A stretch of 64,000 nucleotides of DNA from Histomonas meleagridis 2922-C6/04-290x (GCA_020184695.1 JAANOX010000275.1:124001-188000), one strand, 5' to 3'; shown: positions 30,588 to 62,143, counted from the stretch's first letter. Notes: a model not told the origin generated them from the sequence alone. Numbers and translations are program-made.

Positions 30588-31514
30588 ATGGAACAAACAG
30601 AAACACCCAGAACAGTACTCAAACCAAATGACATTGTTCCTTTTTTTATCAATGTTGTTAATGATAGTCAGCGCCTTTATGAAATTGTTCAAGTTCCATT
30701 AAACGAAGCCAATCCTACACAAATAGCTAATAATCTTGTAGAAGACTTTGGTATTAGTCGAGGTTTTATTGAACCAATTTTATCTCTTGTTGAAACCCAA
30801 TATGATGATTTCAACAAAGTTAGTACTCAAATTCCAACAACAGAATGGGCTATCAACGGAAGTGCAGTACACATTCTCACCATTGAAGTAGGCATAGATG
30901 CTGTTGTTTATGGTGACATGATTGAATGGGATATCTTCGATGAATCAGCAGATCCAGATGAGTTTGCTCGCCAAACAGTCAAAGAACTAGCACTTCCGGT
31001 AGAATTTTCCAATGTCATATCAGCTCAAATACGGTGGCAAGTTATTCGCTTACGTGCAATGCATTGTTATCCAGAAAGATTTCAACAATACATTCAAGAA
31101 AATCGAATTGCCGCACCACAAGTTCAAAAAGGTCTTCGTTCTGGGTCTGACTTACTTGATGCTTCCCCTGTTGTTGGTTTAGTTCCAGGTGTCACAGAGA
31201 AAAAAGCAATTTCATCTCGTGATCGCCATGCAAGACATCTTAAAAGACAAGGTCACACTGTTTCACGTGGCGCTTTGCAACCAGATGAAGATAAGGGCGT
31301 TATCCCAGTCAAGCTAGTTCCCGTAGTGAGAGGGATGCCGATGCCCGAGGATAGCCCATCAATCAATTTGGCTGCAGTCCCATCAATGTTGAATGACGAT
31401 GCGTACGATAGCCCAGATCTCGTTGAAAAAGTGGCGCGGAAATTCAATTCACCTCTTTTATTATCACATGCTCATGGATTAAATGATTCGGGATCTGATT
31501 CTGGAAGTGATTAA
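30588..31514 (+). CDS. SNF5: SNF5/SMARCB1-family chromatin-remodelling subunit
   Basis: SNF5 repeats: PTQIANNLVEDF and DMIEWDIFDESADPDEFARQTVKELALPVEFSNVISAQIRWQ. Confidence 0.8.
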   Translation: MEQTETPRTVLKPNDIVPFFINVVNDSQRLYEIVQVPLNEANPTQIANNLVEDFGISRGFIEPILSLVETQYDDFNKVSTQIPTTEWAINGSAVHILTIEVGIDAVVYGDMIEWDIFDESADPDEFARQTVKELALPVEFSNVISAQIRWQVIRLRAMHCYPERFQQYIQENRIAAPQVQKGLRSGSDLLDASPVVGLVPGVTEKKAISSRDRHARHLKRQGHTVSRGALQPDEDKGVIPVKLVPVVRGMPMPEDSPSINLAAVPSMLNDDAYDSPDLVEKVARKFNSPLLLSHAHGLNDSGSDSGSD

Positions 31515-49279: not shown

Positions 49280-49947
49280 TTGTCATCGACTTTTGTACTA
49301 AATGCGAATTTGTGATTATAAAGTAAGAAGAATTTTGGATGTTGCGCTCTTTGGTGTCGGTAAATCCCATTTTATTAGACATGAAATGATGCTGAATAAA
49401 TTCATTTTAATAAAAAAATTGAAATTTTTTAACATTGTTGTGACTTAATTAAGAAAATCATTCATTGTACAATTTTTTAATATTTTTTATTATAATATTT
49501 TTATCTGTATTTGTTGTTAGATAAAATTTAGATATTATGTTAGCAAAATGTGGCATCTACTTGTTCCTTAATAGTTATAAAGAAAAATGATTGTCATTGA
49601 TTTTTGCGTCGTAAAAATTTGATTTGTGATGAAGTTAAAAAAGTTGGAATTAGATATGGTGGAATGCTGACCGATAATGAACTGCTTTGTGAGTGGGGGG
49701 CTTGTTTAATACGATGTGTTTTCAAAGAAATGCTGTTCTCAAGGTTAACTATAAATAAGATTGATTAATTGTCCATTTTGATAAAAAAGTAAAGGTTTCC
49801 TCGGAGATTTTTGTTTTCGGGTATTAATGAATTTCATACTTTGGAACATTAAACTAAAATCACTAAGATAAAATGAGCATTTACAACAAAATGAATAATT
49901 GCAATAATAAATCGAAATATGCATCAACATCAAAATGAATAAGTATC

Positions 49948-50395
49948 AAATTCACATTCACAACAAATAAATAATTGTAATAGTCAAAATTCACATTCAC
50001 AACAAATAAATAAATATCAAATTCACATTTACAACAAATAAATATTTGTAATAGTCAAAATTCACATTCACAACAAATAAATAATTATCAAATTCACATT
50101 CACAACAAATAAATAATTATCAAATTCACATTCACAACAAATAAATAAATATCAAATTCACATTCACAACAAATAAATAAATATCAAATTCACATTCACA
50201 ACAAATAAATAAATATCAAATTCACATTCACAACAAATAAATAATCGTAATAGTCAAAATTCACATTCACAACAAATAAATAATTATCAAATTCACATTC
50301 ACAACAAATAAATAAATATCAAATTCACATTCACAACAAATAAATAATTGTAATAATAAGACAAAATTCACATTCACAACAAATAAATAATTATC
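49948..50395. repeat. Minisatellite of 13 units with 32-bp and 39/43-bp variants
   Basis: Near-constant core aaattcacattcacaacaaataaataa followed by linker (a/t)tatc (32-bp unit) or (t/c)gtaatagtca (39-bp unit); unit order B A B A A A A A B A A B' A. Confidence 0.95.
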
Positions 50396-55495: not shown

Positions 55496-55760
55496 TTCAA
55501 TAAATTTAATTTTGATAGTTCTTTTATAAAAATGTTTTTCACTTCAAATATTTGTGGAAACAAAGTGCTAAATGTTATCGATAATAGGGAAAGCTTTCCT
55601 GTGTGTGTCCATTTCCATTTTTAGGGAATTCCTTAGTCGCACGTTACCATGTCGTTCACATTCAAATAAACTGGTACAAATAAATCGAGAGTACGATAGA
55701 TTGAAAATTAAAAAAATGTTTTGTAAACTTATCAAAATTGAATAAAGGATTATTTCACGA

Positions 55761-55825
55761 ATAATAAAGGCAACTTTTTAAGACGATGAACTTTGGTCAT
55801 CGTCTTAAAAAGTTGCCTTTATTAT
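55761..55825. repeat. Perfect inverted repeat, 29-bp arms with a 7-bp asymmetric spacer (candidate recombinase site or element end)
   Basis: ataataaaggcaactttttaagacgatga-actttgg-tcatcgtcttaaaaagttgcctttattat; arms checked base by base; 106 bp upstream of the tyrosine recombinase ATG. Confidence 0.95.
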
Positions 55826-55931
55826 GTGTAATTCTCATCGACACTTTTTGAAATGAAAATATTAAAAAAAGTAATTTCGCTCACAATTTTCAATATTGTT
55901 TTTAAGTTTCTTTTTATTAATCATATTTAAA

Positions 55932-56837
55932 ATGTCATTGATGGAGCAATTACTTGCTGAAGCTGATACAATATCAGCTGCAAATGTTTCAGCAGGAACG
56001 AAAAGTACATATGATAGGCTGATTCATGCTTATGCCAAAGTGATGATAAATCTAATACACGAAGAACCATTTCCTATTACTCATGACAAAATGGTTGCAT
56101 TCATTATATTTAAAAAGAATCAGAATATGAAATGTTGTACGTTACTAGCTTACATTAATAGTTCTACACATTATTTTCAACAAAATGACTTGGAAATATT
56201 AACACATTCAATAAAATTCAAAATATTTATATGTGGAATAAGGAGGTCACTATATTCAGGTTTTTGTCCGAATGCAAAGTTACCGTTTGATCCAAAATGG
56301 TTTTCGAAAATAATTGAAAAATTTCCATTGACAAATATTGATAATTTGAAGTTTATATTTTTGATATCGTTAATGTTTGCAGCATTTCTCAGAATAAGTG
56401 AAGCGCTAAACCTTAAAAAAAGCGATATTGTAATTGAAGGCGAAAACTTAATAAAACTAAACATACAGACTTCTAAAACAGATCAATTCGGGAATGGTAC
56501 GTTTACATATATTTATGATAATAAGACAAATTATAGCCCATTCCGATTTATAAAATATTTGAACTTAATTTCTAGTAATGATCACATAGAATCTCGAACT
56601 CAATCCACACTCAGAGCTCATCTTCTTTATGTACTTAGGACTATTGGAGTTGAAGAATATCAAAATTATGGATTTCATTGTTTTCGTAGAGGAGCAGCAT
56701 ATTATGTTTCACTAAAAAATGTTAATAATTGTATCATAAAAGCCCATGGAAGGTGGAAAAGTTCTGCATATACTCGATATGTTTCAGTAGACATGAACAG
56801 AGCTGGTATTGAAATTTCAGAGGCACTTTCTATATAA
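55932..56837 (+). CDS. Intact tyrosine recombinase, DIRS/Crypton-type (stand-alone)
   Basis: Catalytic residues R (FLRISE), K (SKTDQ), H-x-x-R (HCFRRG), W (HGRWKS), Y (AYTRY); N-terminal T..TY SAM-like core-binding domain; Inr-like TCATA at 55921. Confidence 0.9.
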   Translation: MSLMEQLLAEADTISAANVSAGTKSTYDRLIHAYAKVMINLIHEEPFPITHDKMVAFIIFKKNQNMKCCTLLAYINSSTHYFQQNDLEILTHSIKFKIFICGIRRSLYSGFCPNAKLPFDPKWFSKIIEKFPLTNIDNLKFIFLISLMFAAFLRISEALNLKKSDIVIEGENLIKLNIQTSKTDQFGNGTFTYIYDNKTNYSPFRFIKYLNLISSNDHIESRTQSTLRAHLLYVLRTIGVEEYQNYGFHCFRRGAAYYVSLKNVNNCIIKAHGRWKSSAYTRYVSVDMNRAGIEISEALSI

Positions 56838-56959
56838 ACAATAAAATTTTTGCGATTTTTAAATTGAATTGAATTTTGTGAACGAAATTATTTTTTTTAA
56901 TTTTTTCATTTTGAAAAGTGGCTTGATAAGATTTTCGATTTTTTAGCAAAAGTCTCTTC

Positions 56960-58207
56960 CTAATTCAAATTATTTATTAAATTTTTTAATCTTTCTTCTA
57001 TAAGTTTTTTTTCGTCGAATCTTAATATACAGAACCATCGACCTTTACATTGTACAGGACGACTGTTTTGCAAACATTTGGAAATATTTCCACATTGATG
57101 ACCAAATTTGCAAATCATATCGTATAGAACTTTATCTTCTCCTTCTGACCAAGGACAGTATGTTCTCATGTTAGATAGAATTTTTTTAAATTCCTATTCT
57201 AAACCTAAAAACCTTGAAATTGAACCTCCATTCATTTCAAGACAAAGCCGTGAACGGTCTCCAAAACCCAAACAAAGATTGTTAATTAATGAAATGTCCA
57301 AATTGTCCCATGTTTGTTCCAAGATCAATTTCAACTCTTCCAGATCTTTTGGGGACCTCTTGTAAATTATTTGCTTCATTATAGCCCAGAGCAACTCGAT
57401 TGGGTTTAGGTCAGGCGAGTTGGCCGGCCAATCATTTATTACATCGACACGATCCTCAAGCCACTCCATAGATTGTACTGAAGTATGGCACCGAGCCCCA
57501 TCCTGAACATAAATCCAATCAAGCTTACCATGGGTTTTGTTCATATCCTCAATAAAATTGGAAGCTTCCATGTTTTGTATATATTGTCCTGAGTCAATTG
57601 ATTTATCTACAATTACTAATTTGCTCTTGTACCCAAAAGATATCACACCATAGATCATTACAGATTTTGAAAATTTGGCCTTTTTTATTATTGTTTCTTC
57701 GACATACTCGCCTTTTCTCATTCACATCCATTCATTATCTTTTCCCAAGACAAATCGCGATTCATCAGAGAAAGCGATCTTGTCAAGATATGATTTTTGT
57801 GTGAGTATTTTTTTTACAAATTCGATTCTTGCTTCTATTTGTTGATGCGTTAAATCTTGTTCTACCTTACAAGGTCTATAACGAAATTTCATTTCGTTTC
57901 TGACCTTTGTAACAGATTGATGGGAAATCGATAAATGAAAACATTCTTCAATTTTATCCGCTAATTCTTTTGAAGATAATGTTGGTTCAAGAAGGGTCTT
58001 TAATTCTATAAATTCTCTAATTTTATTTGTAATAACAACTGATCTTCCTCTTATTGTTGCATCAGGTACTTGACCAGTATTGGTGTATGCTTTAATTGTA
58101 CTGCTTATCCTGTTAGTACCTACATGAAGGGTATTTGCTATTGTTTGATAGTTGTGCCCTAATTTGTACATTTCTATTATTGACTGTTCTTTGTTCCACG
58201 AGGTCAT
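56960..58207 (-). mobile_element. Tc1/IS630-family (DD34E) transposase pseudogene fused in frame to a C-terminal Myb domain (copy 1)
   Basis: Three track ORFs share one frame, split by TGA (57722-57724) and TAG (57194-57196): HTH, FSDESRF, VQDGARCH, WPANSPDLNPIE (34 aa between D and E), then Myb WSEGEDKVL...QCKGRW. Confidence 0.85.
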
Positions 58208-58308
58208 CTGATTTAAATTAATAAACGGTGTTCATTGAAAAAATTCAATATGTTCTCTCAAGCTCGAATTATTTGTACCAGTTTAGAAATTAAACATTTT
58301 CTCTGCAA

Positions 58309-60492
58309 ATGGCGAAATTCTTTAATGGCGAGATCAAAGGAGAGATTTTTCAGCTCCGGAATGAACTGGATGGTAATGATCCAGCAGTTCGAAAGGATGC
58401 TGCCAAACGAGTTGTTAATTTAATGCGAAGTGGCGAAAATGTTCAATCTTTATTTTCCTCTATGCTTCGCTGTGTCAAAACAGACGATCTTGAACTTAAA
58501 AAACTTGTATATCTTTATCTCATCAATTATTCAACACAAGAACCTGAGCAAGCAATTATGGCAGTTAATACATTTATCAAAGATTCCGAAGACAATAACC
58601 CACTTGTTCGTGCCCTTGCTGTTCGTACAATGTGTAGAATTAAGCTTCATAGTGTTGCTGAATACATGGTTATTCCATTAAAAAAATGCCTTCATGATGA
58701 TTCACCATATGTACGCAAGACAGCTGTTTTTGGTGTTACCAAACTTTATGATGTTATTCCCGAAGCCGTTGAGAATGCTCAACTTTTTGAAGATTTATTA
58801 CAATCACTTCAAGACGAGAATCCTATGGTCGTTTCAAACGCGACAGCAGCCATTGCAGAGATAAATGAAAAACGGTCCACACCCATTTTTACACTTAATT
58901 CCCAATCAATCACACCAATATTATCAGCCACCACAAGTTGCACCGAATGGTGTCAAACTATTCTATACGATGCCATCAGTCGATACAAACCCGAGTCTGC
59001 TGACGATGCCGACTTTTTAATCGATCGATTAATTCCATATCTCAAACACAAAAACCCGTCAGTTGTTATAGGTTCCTTCAAGTGTATCTTTTTATTTATG
59101 CCATATTCACATAAGAAAAACGCCGAAATATTCCCACAAATTATACCACCATTTATCACATTAGTCACATCTGCAGAACCTGAAATCCAATACGTAATAC
59201 TTCGAACACTTTCATTGTTCGTACAAAAGTACCCGAAGTCATTAACGCGTGAAATTCGTGTGTTCTTTTGTAATTATAATGATCCATCATATATCAAAAT
59301 GGAGAAATTAGAAATTATTGTAACAATTTGTGGTCCTCAAAACACTCAAATTGTACTCGATGAGTTTTCTGAGTATTGTAACGAAATCGATGTAATGTTT
59401 GTCCGAAAGACAATTAGATGCATTGGAAAAATTGCGATAAAAATCGAAGCATCTGTTCGTAGATGTGTTGATATACTTATAAGGCTCGTTGCAGGTAAAG
59501 CTGATTATGCTATAGAAGAATCAGTGATAGTATTATGTGACATATTACGGAGATTTCCTGGATCTTTCGAATCTACAATAGAAACTATTTGCGGTTCGAT
59601 TGAGCGTCTAAAAGATGCGCGCGCACGTGCTGCTGGAATTTGGATTTTAGGTGAATATTGCGATGTGATAAAAAATGTCGACATATTGTTAGACCCATTT
59701 TTAGATACATTTGGCGATGAACAACCATATGTACAGTTACAGTTGTTAACTGCGTTCGTCAAAGTATATTTGAAAAATCCGGAAAGTTCGAAAGACCAAT
59801 TACAATTCATTTTAAATGAAGCTGTTAAGGATAAATATGTTCCGGATGTTGTTAACAGAGCTTTAATTTATTGGAGATTATTATCTACAGATCAAGACTT
59901 CTCTAAGGAAATTGTCTTTTTCGGCAAGGACAAAATTCAATACGAAAACCAAAAATTTGACGGCGAAGTTTTGACAGAATTAATTCAGAACATGGGAACG
60001 GTTTCCGGGGTGCTCCATGTTGTACCTTCTGATTTTGTAAGAAAGAATCGATTTGTTCCTGAAGCAAACGATGATATCGGGTTTGATAATGAAAACTTAA
60101 GAAATTGGAATAAGGTTAATTTGGATAATGAAAAAATTATAGATATGTTCATTGATTTTGATGAAAATAATTTATACTTACGAATAGCAAATAAATCAAA
60201 TTCAAGTTTGAGCCAATTAGCATTGGCCATAAACGTAAATAAAATAGGCTTAGTAATGAAAGAAAATCCATCTTTTCCAGATGCAATTGAATCTGGAGAA
60301 ATTATAGAAGTTGTAACTCCGATCGAATTTGATCAAAGTAAAGCAGGAAACTATGATAAAAATGAATTGCAAATTGCGTTGAGAACGAACGCTGGAAATA
60401 TATTTGGAATGTGCAATATTCCATCACAAACACAAACTTCACAGACTAAACAACAAGTTAGTGATCAGTTGGTTGATGACTTGTTGATTTAA
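58309..60492 (+). CDS. AP-1/AP-2/AP-4-type adaptor complex beta subunit (beta-adaptin)
   Basis: KGEIFQLRNEL, LELKKLVYLYL, NPLVRALAVRTM, PYVRKTA, IFFCNYNDPSYIKMEKLE-like trunk, WILGEY, VVNRALIYWRLL, Ig-like appendage. Confidence 0.93.
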   Translation: MAKFFNGEIKGEIFQLRNELDGNDPAVRKDAAKRVVNLMRSGENVQSLFSSMLRCVKTDDLELKKLVYLYLINYSTQEPEQAIMAVNTFIKDSEDNNPLVRALAVRTMCRIKLHSVAEYMVIPLKKCLHDDSPYVRKTAVFGVTKLYDVIPEAVENAQLFEDLLQSLQDENPMVVSNATAAIAEINEKRSTPIFTLNSQSITPILSATTSCTEWCQTILYDAISRYKPESADDADFLIDRLIPYLKHKNPSVVIGSFKCIFLFMPYSHKKNAEIFPQIIPPFITLVTSAEPEIQYVILRTLSLFVQKYPKSLTREIRVFFCNYNDPSYIKMEKLEIIVTICGPQNTQIVLDEFSEYCNEIDVMFVRKTIRCIGKIAIKIEASVRRCVDILIRLVAGKADYAIEESVIVLCDILRRFPGSFESTIETICGSIERLKDARARAAGIWILGEYCDVIKNVDILLDPFLDTFGDEQPYVQLQLLTAFVKVYLKNPESSKDQLQFILNEAVKDKYVPDVVNRALIYWRLLSTDQDFSKEIVFFGKDKIQYENQKFDGEVLTELIQNMGTVSGVLHVVPSDFVRKNRFVPEANDDIGFDNENLRNWNKVNLDNEKIIDMFIDFDENNLYLRIANKSNSSLSQLALAINVNKIGLVMKENPSFPDAIESGEIIEVVTPIEFDQSKAGNYDKNELQIALRTNAGNIFGMCNIPSQTQTSQTKQQVSDQLVDDLLI

Positions 60493-61000: not shown

Positions 61001-62143
61001 TCAATCTATCATGTTTTTCCTTTGACTGAGATTTTGAAATCGATTTTTAACATCTGTTTTGTCTCTTCCTAGGCGTTCCCCAATCAGTTTCCATTTGTTT
61101 CCGAACTCTGCTTGAAGATTGATCAAATTCACATCTTCATCGATTTTCCACATTTTACCTTCATTTATAGCCACTTTGTTTTTTACCTCATTAATGTGGC
61201 TGGTAAGGTACTGCAAAGCACTTCCTCCTCCAAGATCCCTGACAAGTTCACATCTCCTGATGAAATCGGCTATGAGAGCGTCCATAAACTTGCTATCAAT
61301 GGAAAACCAAATTCTATTCAGCACAGAATAAATCGAATCACCTTATCTCCATTCATATTTTTTGATTTTTCTTTTCATGATCGCCCAAATATTTTCGATA
61401 GAAATAAGGTCGGGCGAGTTTGGTGGCCAGCCAGGAACCACAATTGCTTTATCAGATAGCCACTTTATTGTTTGTGATGCATTATGGCAAGGAGCGCCAT
61501 CTTGCATAAAACACCACTTAAATTGACCATATTTCATGACACATGTCTGAATTACTTTGCTATATTTTATAATTCTTTGTTATTCTCCTGCATCAACGAA
61601 ACCTGAGCATCTCATCAATGGCGACCGATAACCAATCCCAATTGCTCCCCAAACCATAGCTCCAGGATTGAAATTGGTTTTTTCAGCAAAATATGTATCA
61701 TTCCGATGGCCGCGCTTTATCCTTCTCCAGCAATTGTTGGGCCCTCTTTCAAATCTGCATTCATCAGCAAAAACTATATTGCTGACTTGGGATTGGTTAT
61801 CAAGTACTTATTGACAAAACTCTAATCGCATATGTTTTTGTACTTCTGTGACTTCTTGCTTGATATATGGCGACCTGTAAATAAAACCCTGCTTTCTTCT
61901 TGCTCTAACAATTGTGGACTTTGAGATACTTGTTGCATATATTTTATTTACAGCTGAGGCAATGTCTCCATCTGTAAGCCTAGCATTAGCATAAGAAAGC
62001 ATCTCAATATAATCTGACATCGATTCAGTTAAACAAGGAGGTCGTCCAACTCTGTGATTCATTTTCACTCTCTTCTTTATTGCAGAAATCCTCCTGGAGC
62101 TGATGTTCAGGATTGTAATCTTATGATTGTTTTTCTGGTTAAC
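61001..62143 (-). mobile_element. Tc1/IS630-family (DD34E) transposase pseudogene fused in frame to a C-terminal Myb domain (copy 2, divergent family)
   Basis: Manual translation gives one frame with TAA at 61808-10, 61580-82 and 61343-45: GRPP HTH, IVFADECRF, AMVWGAIG, MQDGAPCH, WPPNSPDLISIE (DD34E), transposase tail IWFSID..GGGS, then Myb WKIDEDVNL..FGNKWKLIGERLGR..VKNRF. Confidence 0.85.

Follow-up and report, generated by a model that had tools for sequence, protein, structure and literature searches.

Organization of the locus

The window, by which we mean the whole 64,000-nucleotide stretch of DNA from the poultry parasite Histomonas meleagridis analyzed here, contains a Tc1-type element (copy 1) on the minus strand at 55669-58283, with a TA target-site duplication on each side. 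The duplication lies at 55667..55668 on the 3' side and at 58284..58285 on the 5' side, and at both ends the TA abuts the terminal AACTGGTAC; the 5' end of the element runs from TA directly into AACTGGTAC, with the terminal base at 58283. The main body of copy 1 (56931..58283, minus strand) comprises the 5' terminal inverted repeat (TIR), the 5' UTR, the transposase frame and the start of the 3' UTR. When the H. meleagridis assembly (281 contigs, 43,133,364 bases) was searched at the DNA level, two sister copies matched window 56931-58285 at 95-96% nucleotide identity, C78:7189-8542 and C61:412322-413674.

The 5' TIR of about 24 bp (58260..58283, minus strand) is an inverted match of 55669-55692, which places the other end of the element well beyond the main body. 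This detached 3' terminal segment (55669..55756, minus strand) holds the 3' TIR, at about 55669-55692, and a conserved subterminal block in which ACGATA/TATCGT occupies 55693-55698. The final 89 bp of the C78 sister match window 55754-55666 at 93%. A copy truncated at 56931 was considered and rejected, as its last 89 bp sit at 55669-55756, past a nested element and in the same orientation.

The nested element spans 1,174 bp on the plus strand (55757..56930) within the 3' UTR of copy 1, having entered about 25 bp past the transposase stop codon, and is foreign to Tc1. Its ORF at 55896-56837 encodes a 313-aa tyrosine-recombinase-like protein with a weak Pfam match to Phage_integrase (2.1e-3), and a perfect palindrome lies near its left end. 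Junction alignment found the sister Tc1 copies uninterrupted at the insertion point. Because it lies in the Tc1 3' UTR, the nested element must have arrived after the Tc1 insertion. ATTT(C/T) borders it at 55752-55756 and 56931-56935, which indicates that it has a defined target site. Elsewhere in the genome it is present as full-length copies (L064 and L068, 95-96% identity) and as internally deleted copies of about 580 bp.

On its 5' side copy 1 adjoins an intact 727-aa beta-adaptin-like ORF with its ATG at 58309. The first-pass annotation had put the element 101 bp from this ATG; that distance is true of the transposase ATG, but the tip of the element at 58283 is only 25 bp away. Window 58284-58308 represents 25 bp of non-transposon DNA between the Tc1 tip and the adaptin ATG, so any upstream adaptin promoter element beyond 25 bp is now transposon DNA. 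The practical consequence for Histomonas is small: the family is extinct in the assembly, and copy 1 supplies all of the adaptin upstream sequence but these 25 bp.

Coding content of copy 1

Translation of the minus strand from 58207 to 56960 gives a single 416-codon frame with exactly two internal nonsense codons and a terminal stop at 56960-56962, reproducing the earlier observation that three ORFs in the annotation track belong to one frame. Along this frame the order of domains is a paired-like HTH, a DD34E catalytic core and one Myb repeat. The N-terminal paired-like bipartite HTH region covers 161 codons (57725..58207, minus strand) and has weak Pfam matches to HTH_Tnp_Tc3_2 (1.1e-3) and PAX (2.2e-3). 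It is followed by a TGA at 57722-57724, after NEWM, and by the catalytic region at 57197..57721 (minus strand; Pfam DDE_3, 3.6e-14). The first catalytic Asp lies just upstream of this interval, in the preceding HTH piece. In the copy 1 translation 34 residues separate the second Asp (QDGARCH) from the Glu (NPIE), a spacing that identifies a DD34E enzyme.

The second nonsense codon, a TAG at 57194-57196 after GLE, stands between the catalytic region and a single damaged Myb repeat at 57017..57163 (minus strand), which a family-specific Myb HMM detects at 3.9e-14. Pfam Myb_DNA-binding (PF00249) scores this repeat at 1.9e-4 and 21.9 bits, against a gathering score of 24.4 bits. At the second conserved Myb Trp three codons of copy 1 are scrambled, reading HQCGN against HQWKY in the C78 sister; the sub-threshold score is due to this scrambling and the loss of the second Trp. 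The repeat had been described as starting 8 codons past the TAG, and this needs correction: the first Myb Trp comes 15 codons after the TAG, and what lies 8 codons past the TAG is merely the ATG that opens the third track ORF.

Both sister copies carry TGG (Trp) at the position of the TGA and AAG (Lys) at the position of the TAG, so both stops are private to copy 1. The suggestion that Trp fits at the TGA was borne out, as TGG is present in both sisters and Trp is kept in all homologues. The TGA at a Trp position would also suit a reading in which both stops are read through or recoded and copy 1 still makes a full-length protein. We consider this highly improbable, since the sister codons are ordinary TGG and AAG, copy 1 has also lost a conserved Myb Trp and carries the nested insertion, and other copies show all three stop types and frameshifts at unrelated places, a pattern of decay rather than recoding. 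Copy 1 is dead: it has two private nonsense codons, a scrambled Myb Trp and a nested 1.17-kb tyrosine-recombinase element. An autonomous element would combine an uninterrupted transposase ORF with two intact ends, and copy 1 is not one.

The Myb tail in other genomic copies

The two sister copies have defects of their own, including a 1-bp deletion in the DDE region. More diverged copies in the genome share 46-65% protein identity in the DDE region and include subfamily B (C279, C99, C251, C207 and C58), subfamily C (C26, C156 and C87), a subfamily D copy (C69) and further diverged copies (C75, C33 and C233). In four or more diverged subfamilies the Myb repeat directly follows the DDE domain, and shares its frame except in frameshifted copies. 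One locus (L004:1180-2232) retains an uninterrupted 351-aa ORF across both domains, with matches to DDE_3 (1.2e-14) and Myb (3.6e-13), and the C26 copy is interrupted by just one stop over about 430 codons. The Myb repeats of sister and cousin copies match Pfam PF00249 at 1e-10 to 1e-13. In the C87 copy (L009, C87:42601-46107) an insert of about 600 bp separates the DDE domain from the Myb repeat.

Self-comparison of subfamilies A, B and C showed one transposase gene enclosed by TIRs of about 18-29 bp, and uninterrupted relatives are about 1.43-1.44 kb long. Reconstruction of the element ends, proposed in the first-pass annotation, yielded the TIRs of about 24 bp and the TA on both sides of copy 1 described above, and the TA-element-TA arrangement was present in 8/8 copies checked. 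Copy 1 and its family thus display the catalytic triad spacing, TA duplication, TIRs, paired-like HTH and catalytic fold of DD34E Tc1 elements.

In copy 1 the Myb repeat comes after the TAG and has its own ATG, as it might if a Tc1 element had come to lie beside a host Myb exon, or if Myb were a separate second gene and the single frame a coincidence. Such a chance juxtaposition has very little probability in our estimation: the TAG is AAG in both sister copies, the Myb repeat lies inside the TIRs in every copy, and subfamilies B, C and D, like dozens of intact metagenome proteins with identities as low as about 31%, have it in frame.

A second, distant Myb-tailed Tc1 was found in the window by tblastn and one-frame translation (61001..62068, minus strand). 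It is 27-31% identical to copy 1, carries three in-frame stops and has a Myb tail with a Pfam match of 1.6e-9; in the DDE tree described below it groups with the metagenomic protein P0019 and the genome copy C233 (L016).

A search of the assembly with the intact homologue P0001 found no full-length open copy, and the best genome copies still carry one or two stops, or a frameshift in Myb. With no intact copy in the genome, activity here cannot be claimed.

Intact homologues, phylogeny and selection

A word-based protein search recovered many intact proteins of 404-463 aa with both DDE_3 and PF00249 from ENA, Logan and JGI metagenomes (P0001-3, 5-7, 10, 14, 16, 18, 19, 21 and P0131), at identities to the query from 61% down to about 31%. 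None of the intact Myb-tailed homologues came from NCBI or UniRef. Their Myb repeats are stronger than that of copy 1, with family members scoring 41-56 bits against the Pfam cut-off of 24.4, and the intact P0131 has an HTH_Tnp_Tc3_2 match of 7.3e-8, also stronger than in copy 1. The D, D and E catalytic columns are invariant in 29 homologues. Across ten intact members the recognition-helix Lys is invariant, as are the first and second Myb Trp, and the third Myb Trp and the recognition-helix Arg are at least 90% conserved (the helix-3 K-x-R-W motif). Lower-ranked relatives, which are ordinary Tc1/IS630 enzymes of 320-360 aa, stop within a few residues of the DDE domain. A scan of metagenome DNA with the family alignment returned generic Tc1 relatives only, none covering Myb, and a scan of viral contigs found nothing.

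These results uphold the proposal of the first-pass annotation that the locus belongs to a Tc1 lineage with an appended C-terminal Myb domain, given the private stops, the in-frame Myb in the subfamilies and the intact 404-463 aa homologues. The uninterrupted DDE-Myb copies that it suggested looking for are present in metagenomes, but no full-length example was found in this genome. Because the sisters have AAG at the TAG position, the subfamilies are in frame and the metagenome proteins are intact, the converse case, in which intact members end at the TAG and Myb is absent from other copies, does not hold; the subfamilies and the intact proteins keep the repeat. One genomic lineage is tied closely to an intact protein: the subfamily D copy (C69, L011) is nearly identical in the DDE domain to the ENA metagenome protein P0009, at a path length of about 0.1, and the P0009 cluster includes the intact 406-aa member P0131. 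An open subfamily D copy thus exists in some sampled population, perhaps of Histomonas or a close relative.

A tree of 97 rows was built from the DDE domain, with the Myb columns left out. The Myb-bearing enzymes group together in this tree, as a 17-row core clade with SH-aLRT support of 99 within a wider 33-row group with support of 82, and their sister group consists of five Histomonas Tc1 elements that lack Myb. Of the members classed as having only a C-terminal extension, some have weak or diverged Myb matches (P0022 and P0026) and others no detectable match (P0017 and P0025). The simplest reading of the tree is that the Myb tail had one origin followed by occasional loss, although support at the deepest node is moderate (SH-aLRT 82).

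Selection on the tail was assessed among subfamilies A to D. In 6/6 pairs the Myb repeat had pN below pS (pN 0.30-0.48, pS 0.61-0.94), a qualitative comparison of pN with pS only, as synonymous sites between the subfamilies are saturated. The N-terminal DNA-binding region likewise had pN below pS, and the linker and the extreme C-terminus look neutral. The sequence comparisons thus show that the Myb tail is ancestral in this Tc1 clade and maintained by selection as part of the enzyme, and not an accident of copy 1.

Predicted structure of the transposase and its tail

The AlphaFold2 model was computed for the intact homologue P0001 with 29 aligned homologues, rather than for the broken copy 1, and has a mean pLDDT of 82.8. 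It contains two N-terminal three-helix bundles followed by an RNase-H-like core, a disordered linker at residues 333-345, and a confident Myb helical bundle (351-364, 368-373 and 380-389) with a terminal helix after it. Foldseek matched the model to the Mos1 transpososome (2e-12), to the catalytic domain of Sleeping Beauty (1.6e-11, TM 0.73-0.76 on target) and to SETMAR (TM 0.84); the matched chains have lengths of 197-342 residues and correspond to the N-terminal region and the catalytic core. Foldseek also matched the paired domains of PAX6 and Prd. For the tail, the best sequence matches in the PDB were c-Myb (2e-21) and the Mybs of Trichomonas vaginalis, with tvMyb2 (3osf) at 8e-19 and tvMyb3 (3zqc) at 1.5e-12, along with 2k9n. 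The closest solved relatives of the tail are DNA-binding Mybs and not chromatin SANT domains.

The transposase is composed of a paired-like HTH, an RNase-H-fold DDE core, a flexible linker of about 15-20 residues and one c-Myb-type repeat. By its sequence, this repeat is predicted to provide a second, sequence-specific DNA-binding module. We consider it very likely that copy 1 is a dead copy of a DD34E Tc1 element in which the Myb tail is an ancestral feature of the clade and, we infer, such a second module. Fusions of transposases with DNA-binding domains are often domesticated, as in SETMAR, whose transposase domain is a structural match here, and the family might on that precedent be a host gene encoding a transposase-derived Myb transcription factor. 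The TIRs and TA duplications, the multiple dispersed copies diverged by 4-5% within subfamilies and the broken state of every genome copy argue against domestication, which we regard as very unlikely.

Comparison with known transposase systems

The transposases of the Tc1/mariner superfamily, on which tools such as Sleeping Beauty are based, are the standard example of a minimal cut-and-paste enzyme. They are generally credited with a single DNA-binding region and with hardly any choice of target other than TA. The Myb-tailed elements share with the Tc1 family (Tc1, Tc3 and Sleeping Beauty) a paired-like bipartite HTH, DD34E, a TA duplication, short TIRs and a length of about 1.4 kb, and the catalytic fold of the P0001 model matches Sleeping Beauty and Mos1. 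Tc1-family transposases, however, are about 340-360 aa long and end just after the catalytic domain, whereas the Myb-tailed clade has 65-100 extra residues that form the linker and the Myb repeat and are conserved in the clade. We found no description of a Myb-tailed Tc1/mariner transposase in the full-text literature searched, a search whose scope did not extend to Repbase and most subscription journals.

Other transposons combine comparable parts in different ways. PIF/Harbinger elements also place a Myb-type DNA-binding module alongside a DDE transposase, and the transposase of Harbinger is recruited by its Myb protein, which attaches to the ends of the transposon. In PIF/Harbinger, however, a gene of its own encodes the Myb protein, the DDE domain belongs to the PIF/IS5 type and the target duplication is 3 bp; the element described here has its Myb repeat in frame with a DDE_3/Tc1-type transposase and a TA duplication, and falls outside the PIF/Harbinger group. 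The pogo/Tigger transposases and SETMAR are likewise enzymes of the Tc1/mariner superfamily bearing extra domains, but the extra DNA-binding module of pogo is N-terminal and of CENP-B type, and SETMAR is a domesticated mariner fused to a host gene. To our knowledge, a C-terminal Myb inside a mobile element occurs in neither pogo/Tigger nor SETMAR. The tail resembles c-Myb R2R3 and T. vaginalis tvMyb1/2/3 in its three spaced Trp and its K-N-x-W recognition helix, and differs in that one repeat is attached to an enzyme here while these host factors use two or three.

The clade retains a second, Myb-type predicted DNA-binding domain under purifying selection across lineages that are about 31% identical. 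It offers a natural experiment in giving a Tc1/mariner enzyme added DNA specificity. If the tail reads transposon ends, the model of how the synaptic complex assembles would change for these elements; if it reads host promoter motifs, it would be a natural targeting module.

Conserved motifs and candidate targets of the Myb tail

Alignment of the ends of subfamilies A, A2, B and C, which are about 67% identical in coding DNA, identified three conserved features: the TIR of about 24 bp, a CCGTTT motif and a block beside the 3' TIR. The TIR is common to all four with variation. CCGTTT (ACCGTTTAT) is invariant in the four subfamilies and lies 15-25 bp before the transposase ATG. The block beside the 3' TIR contains TATCGT and is conserved across subfamilies A, B and C. 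In copy 1 the first motif appears as the M3-type AAACGGT at 58223..58229 on the plus strand, or ACCGTTT on the transposase strand, 16-22 bp before the ATG. The first-pass annotation had reported a Myb-like AAACGGT site beside the adaptin gene; the site exists at 58223-58229, but it belongs to the 5' region of the element and not to the adaptin promoter.

Related motifs occur upstream of other genes in the window. AAC(C/G)GTT is found within 80 nt upstream of about 7/20 long window ORFs, where the background rate is 0.08 per 80 nt, and in Histomonas it probably corresponds to the M3 core promoter element of T. vaginalis. In that species the Myb-like protein M3BP binds motif 3, a core promoter element that resembles a Myb recognition site (PMC4693282). 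The MRE-2 core that tvMyb1 and tvMyb2 read has the sequence TATCGT/ACGATA (PMC3203581). The AAACGGT of the element lies inside it, is retained from one subfamily to another and corresponds to a motif that often precedes host genes, so that it probably serves as the promoter of the element itself. Individual sites of the form AAC(C/G)GTT(T/A), often paired, were observed 17-78 nt upstream of the ORFs at 1410, 6036, 25198, 44799 and 52940, with weaker examples upstream of the ORFs starting at 30588 and 47801.

The likeliest candidate role for the tail, which we put forward tentatively, is that it reads the element's own ACCGTTT in the 5' subterminal or promoter region together with the TATCGT block by the 3' TIR. 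Binding at these motifs would aid end recognition or synapsis, or would feed back on the element's own promoter. Both conserved motifs are short, and they might just as well represent an ordinary promoter and a signal for 3' processing. A second possibility, less likely than recognition of the element's own motifs, is that the tail tethers integration to host promoters with Myb sites of M3 type, for which the chromodomain targeting of chromoviruses is an analogue. In its specific form, where the tail recognizes the host-promoter AAC(C/G)GTT that is also present in the element's 5' region and so tethers the transposase to promoter DNA, we consider this unlikely; if it were true, reading of AAC(C/G)GTT would give a Tc1/mariner element its own module for targeting integration or for regulating itself.

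The first-pass annotation went further and proposed that the tail could steer insertion to promoters or that the family could seed the expansion of host Mybs. Steering to Myb/M3-site promoters draws on the position of the copy 1 tip, 25 bp from the adaptin ATG, on the frequency of AAC(C/G)GTT upstream of host genes and on the c-Myb/tvMyb-type DNA-binding repeat that the tail sequence encodes. However, the AAACGGT cited for the adaptin promoter sits within the element, and in seven other copies, a small sample, the distance to the end of the nearest ORF of 100 aa or more is 174-527 bp, with starts and stops about equal. M3-like motifs are absent within 150 bp at 5/8 copies; over all eight, again a small sample, 8 such motifs were counted against 2.4 expected, mostly from one locus. 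Neither the ORF distances nor the M3-like motifs give a consistent signal of promoter targeting by the Myb tail. These small samples lend the idea no support and do not disprove it, and a weak preference may exist.

Seeding of the host Myb expansion fared no better. The host Myb matches are two-repeat ORFs of about 170-230 aa that are at most 37% identical to the tail. In a Myb-repeat tree of 48 columns, which is poorly resolved, the transposon repeats fall apart from the host repeats, and a single transposon Myb clade is not rejected (p-AU 0.26). With the host Mybs two-repeat, this dissimilar and clustered apart, and with the integration sites mixed as described, the combined proposal of steering and seeding appears improbable. 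Elsewhere in the window, positions 49916-50379 hold about 10 overlapping direct-repeat copies with a spacing of 32/39 nt.
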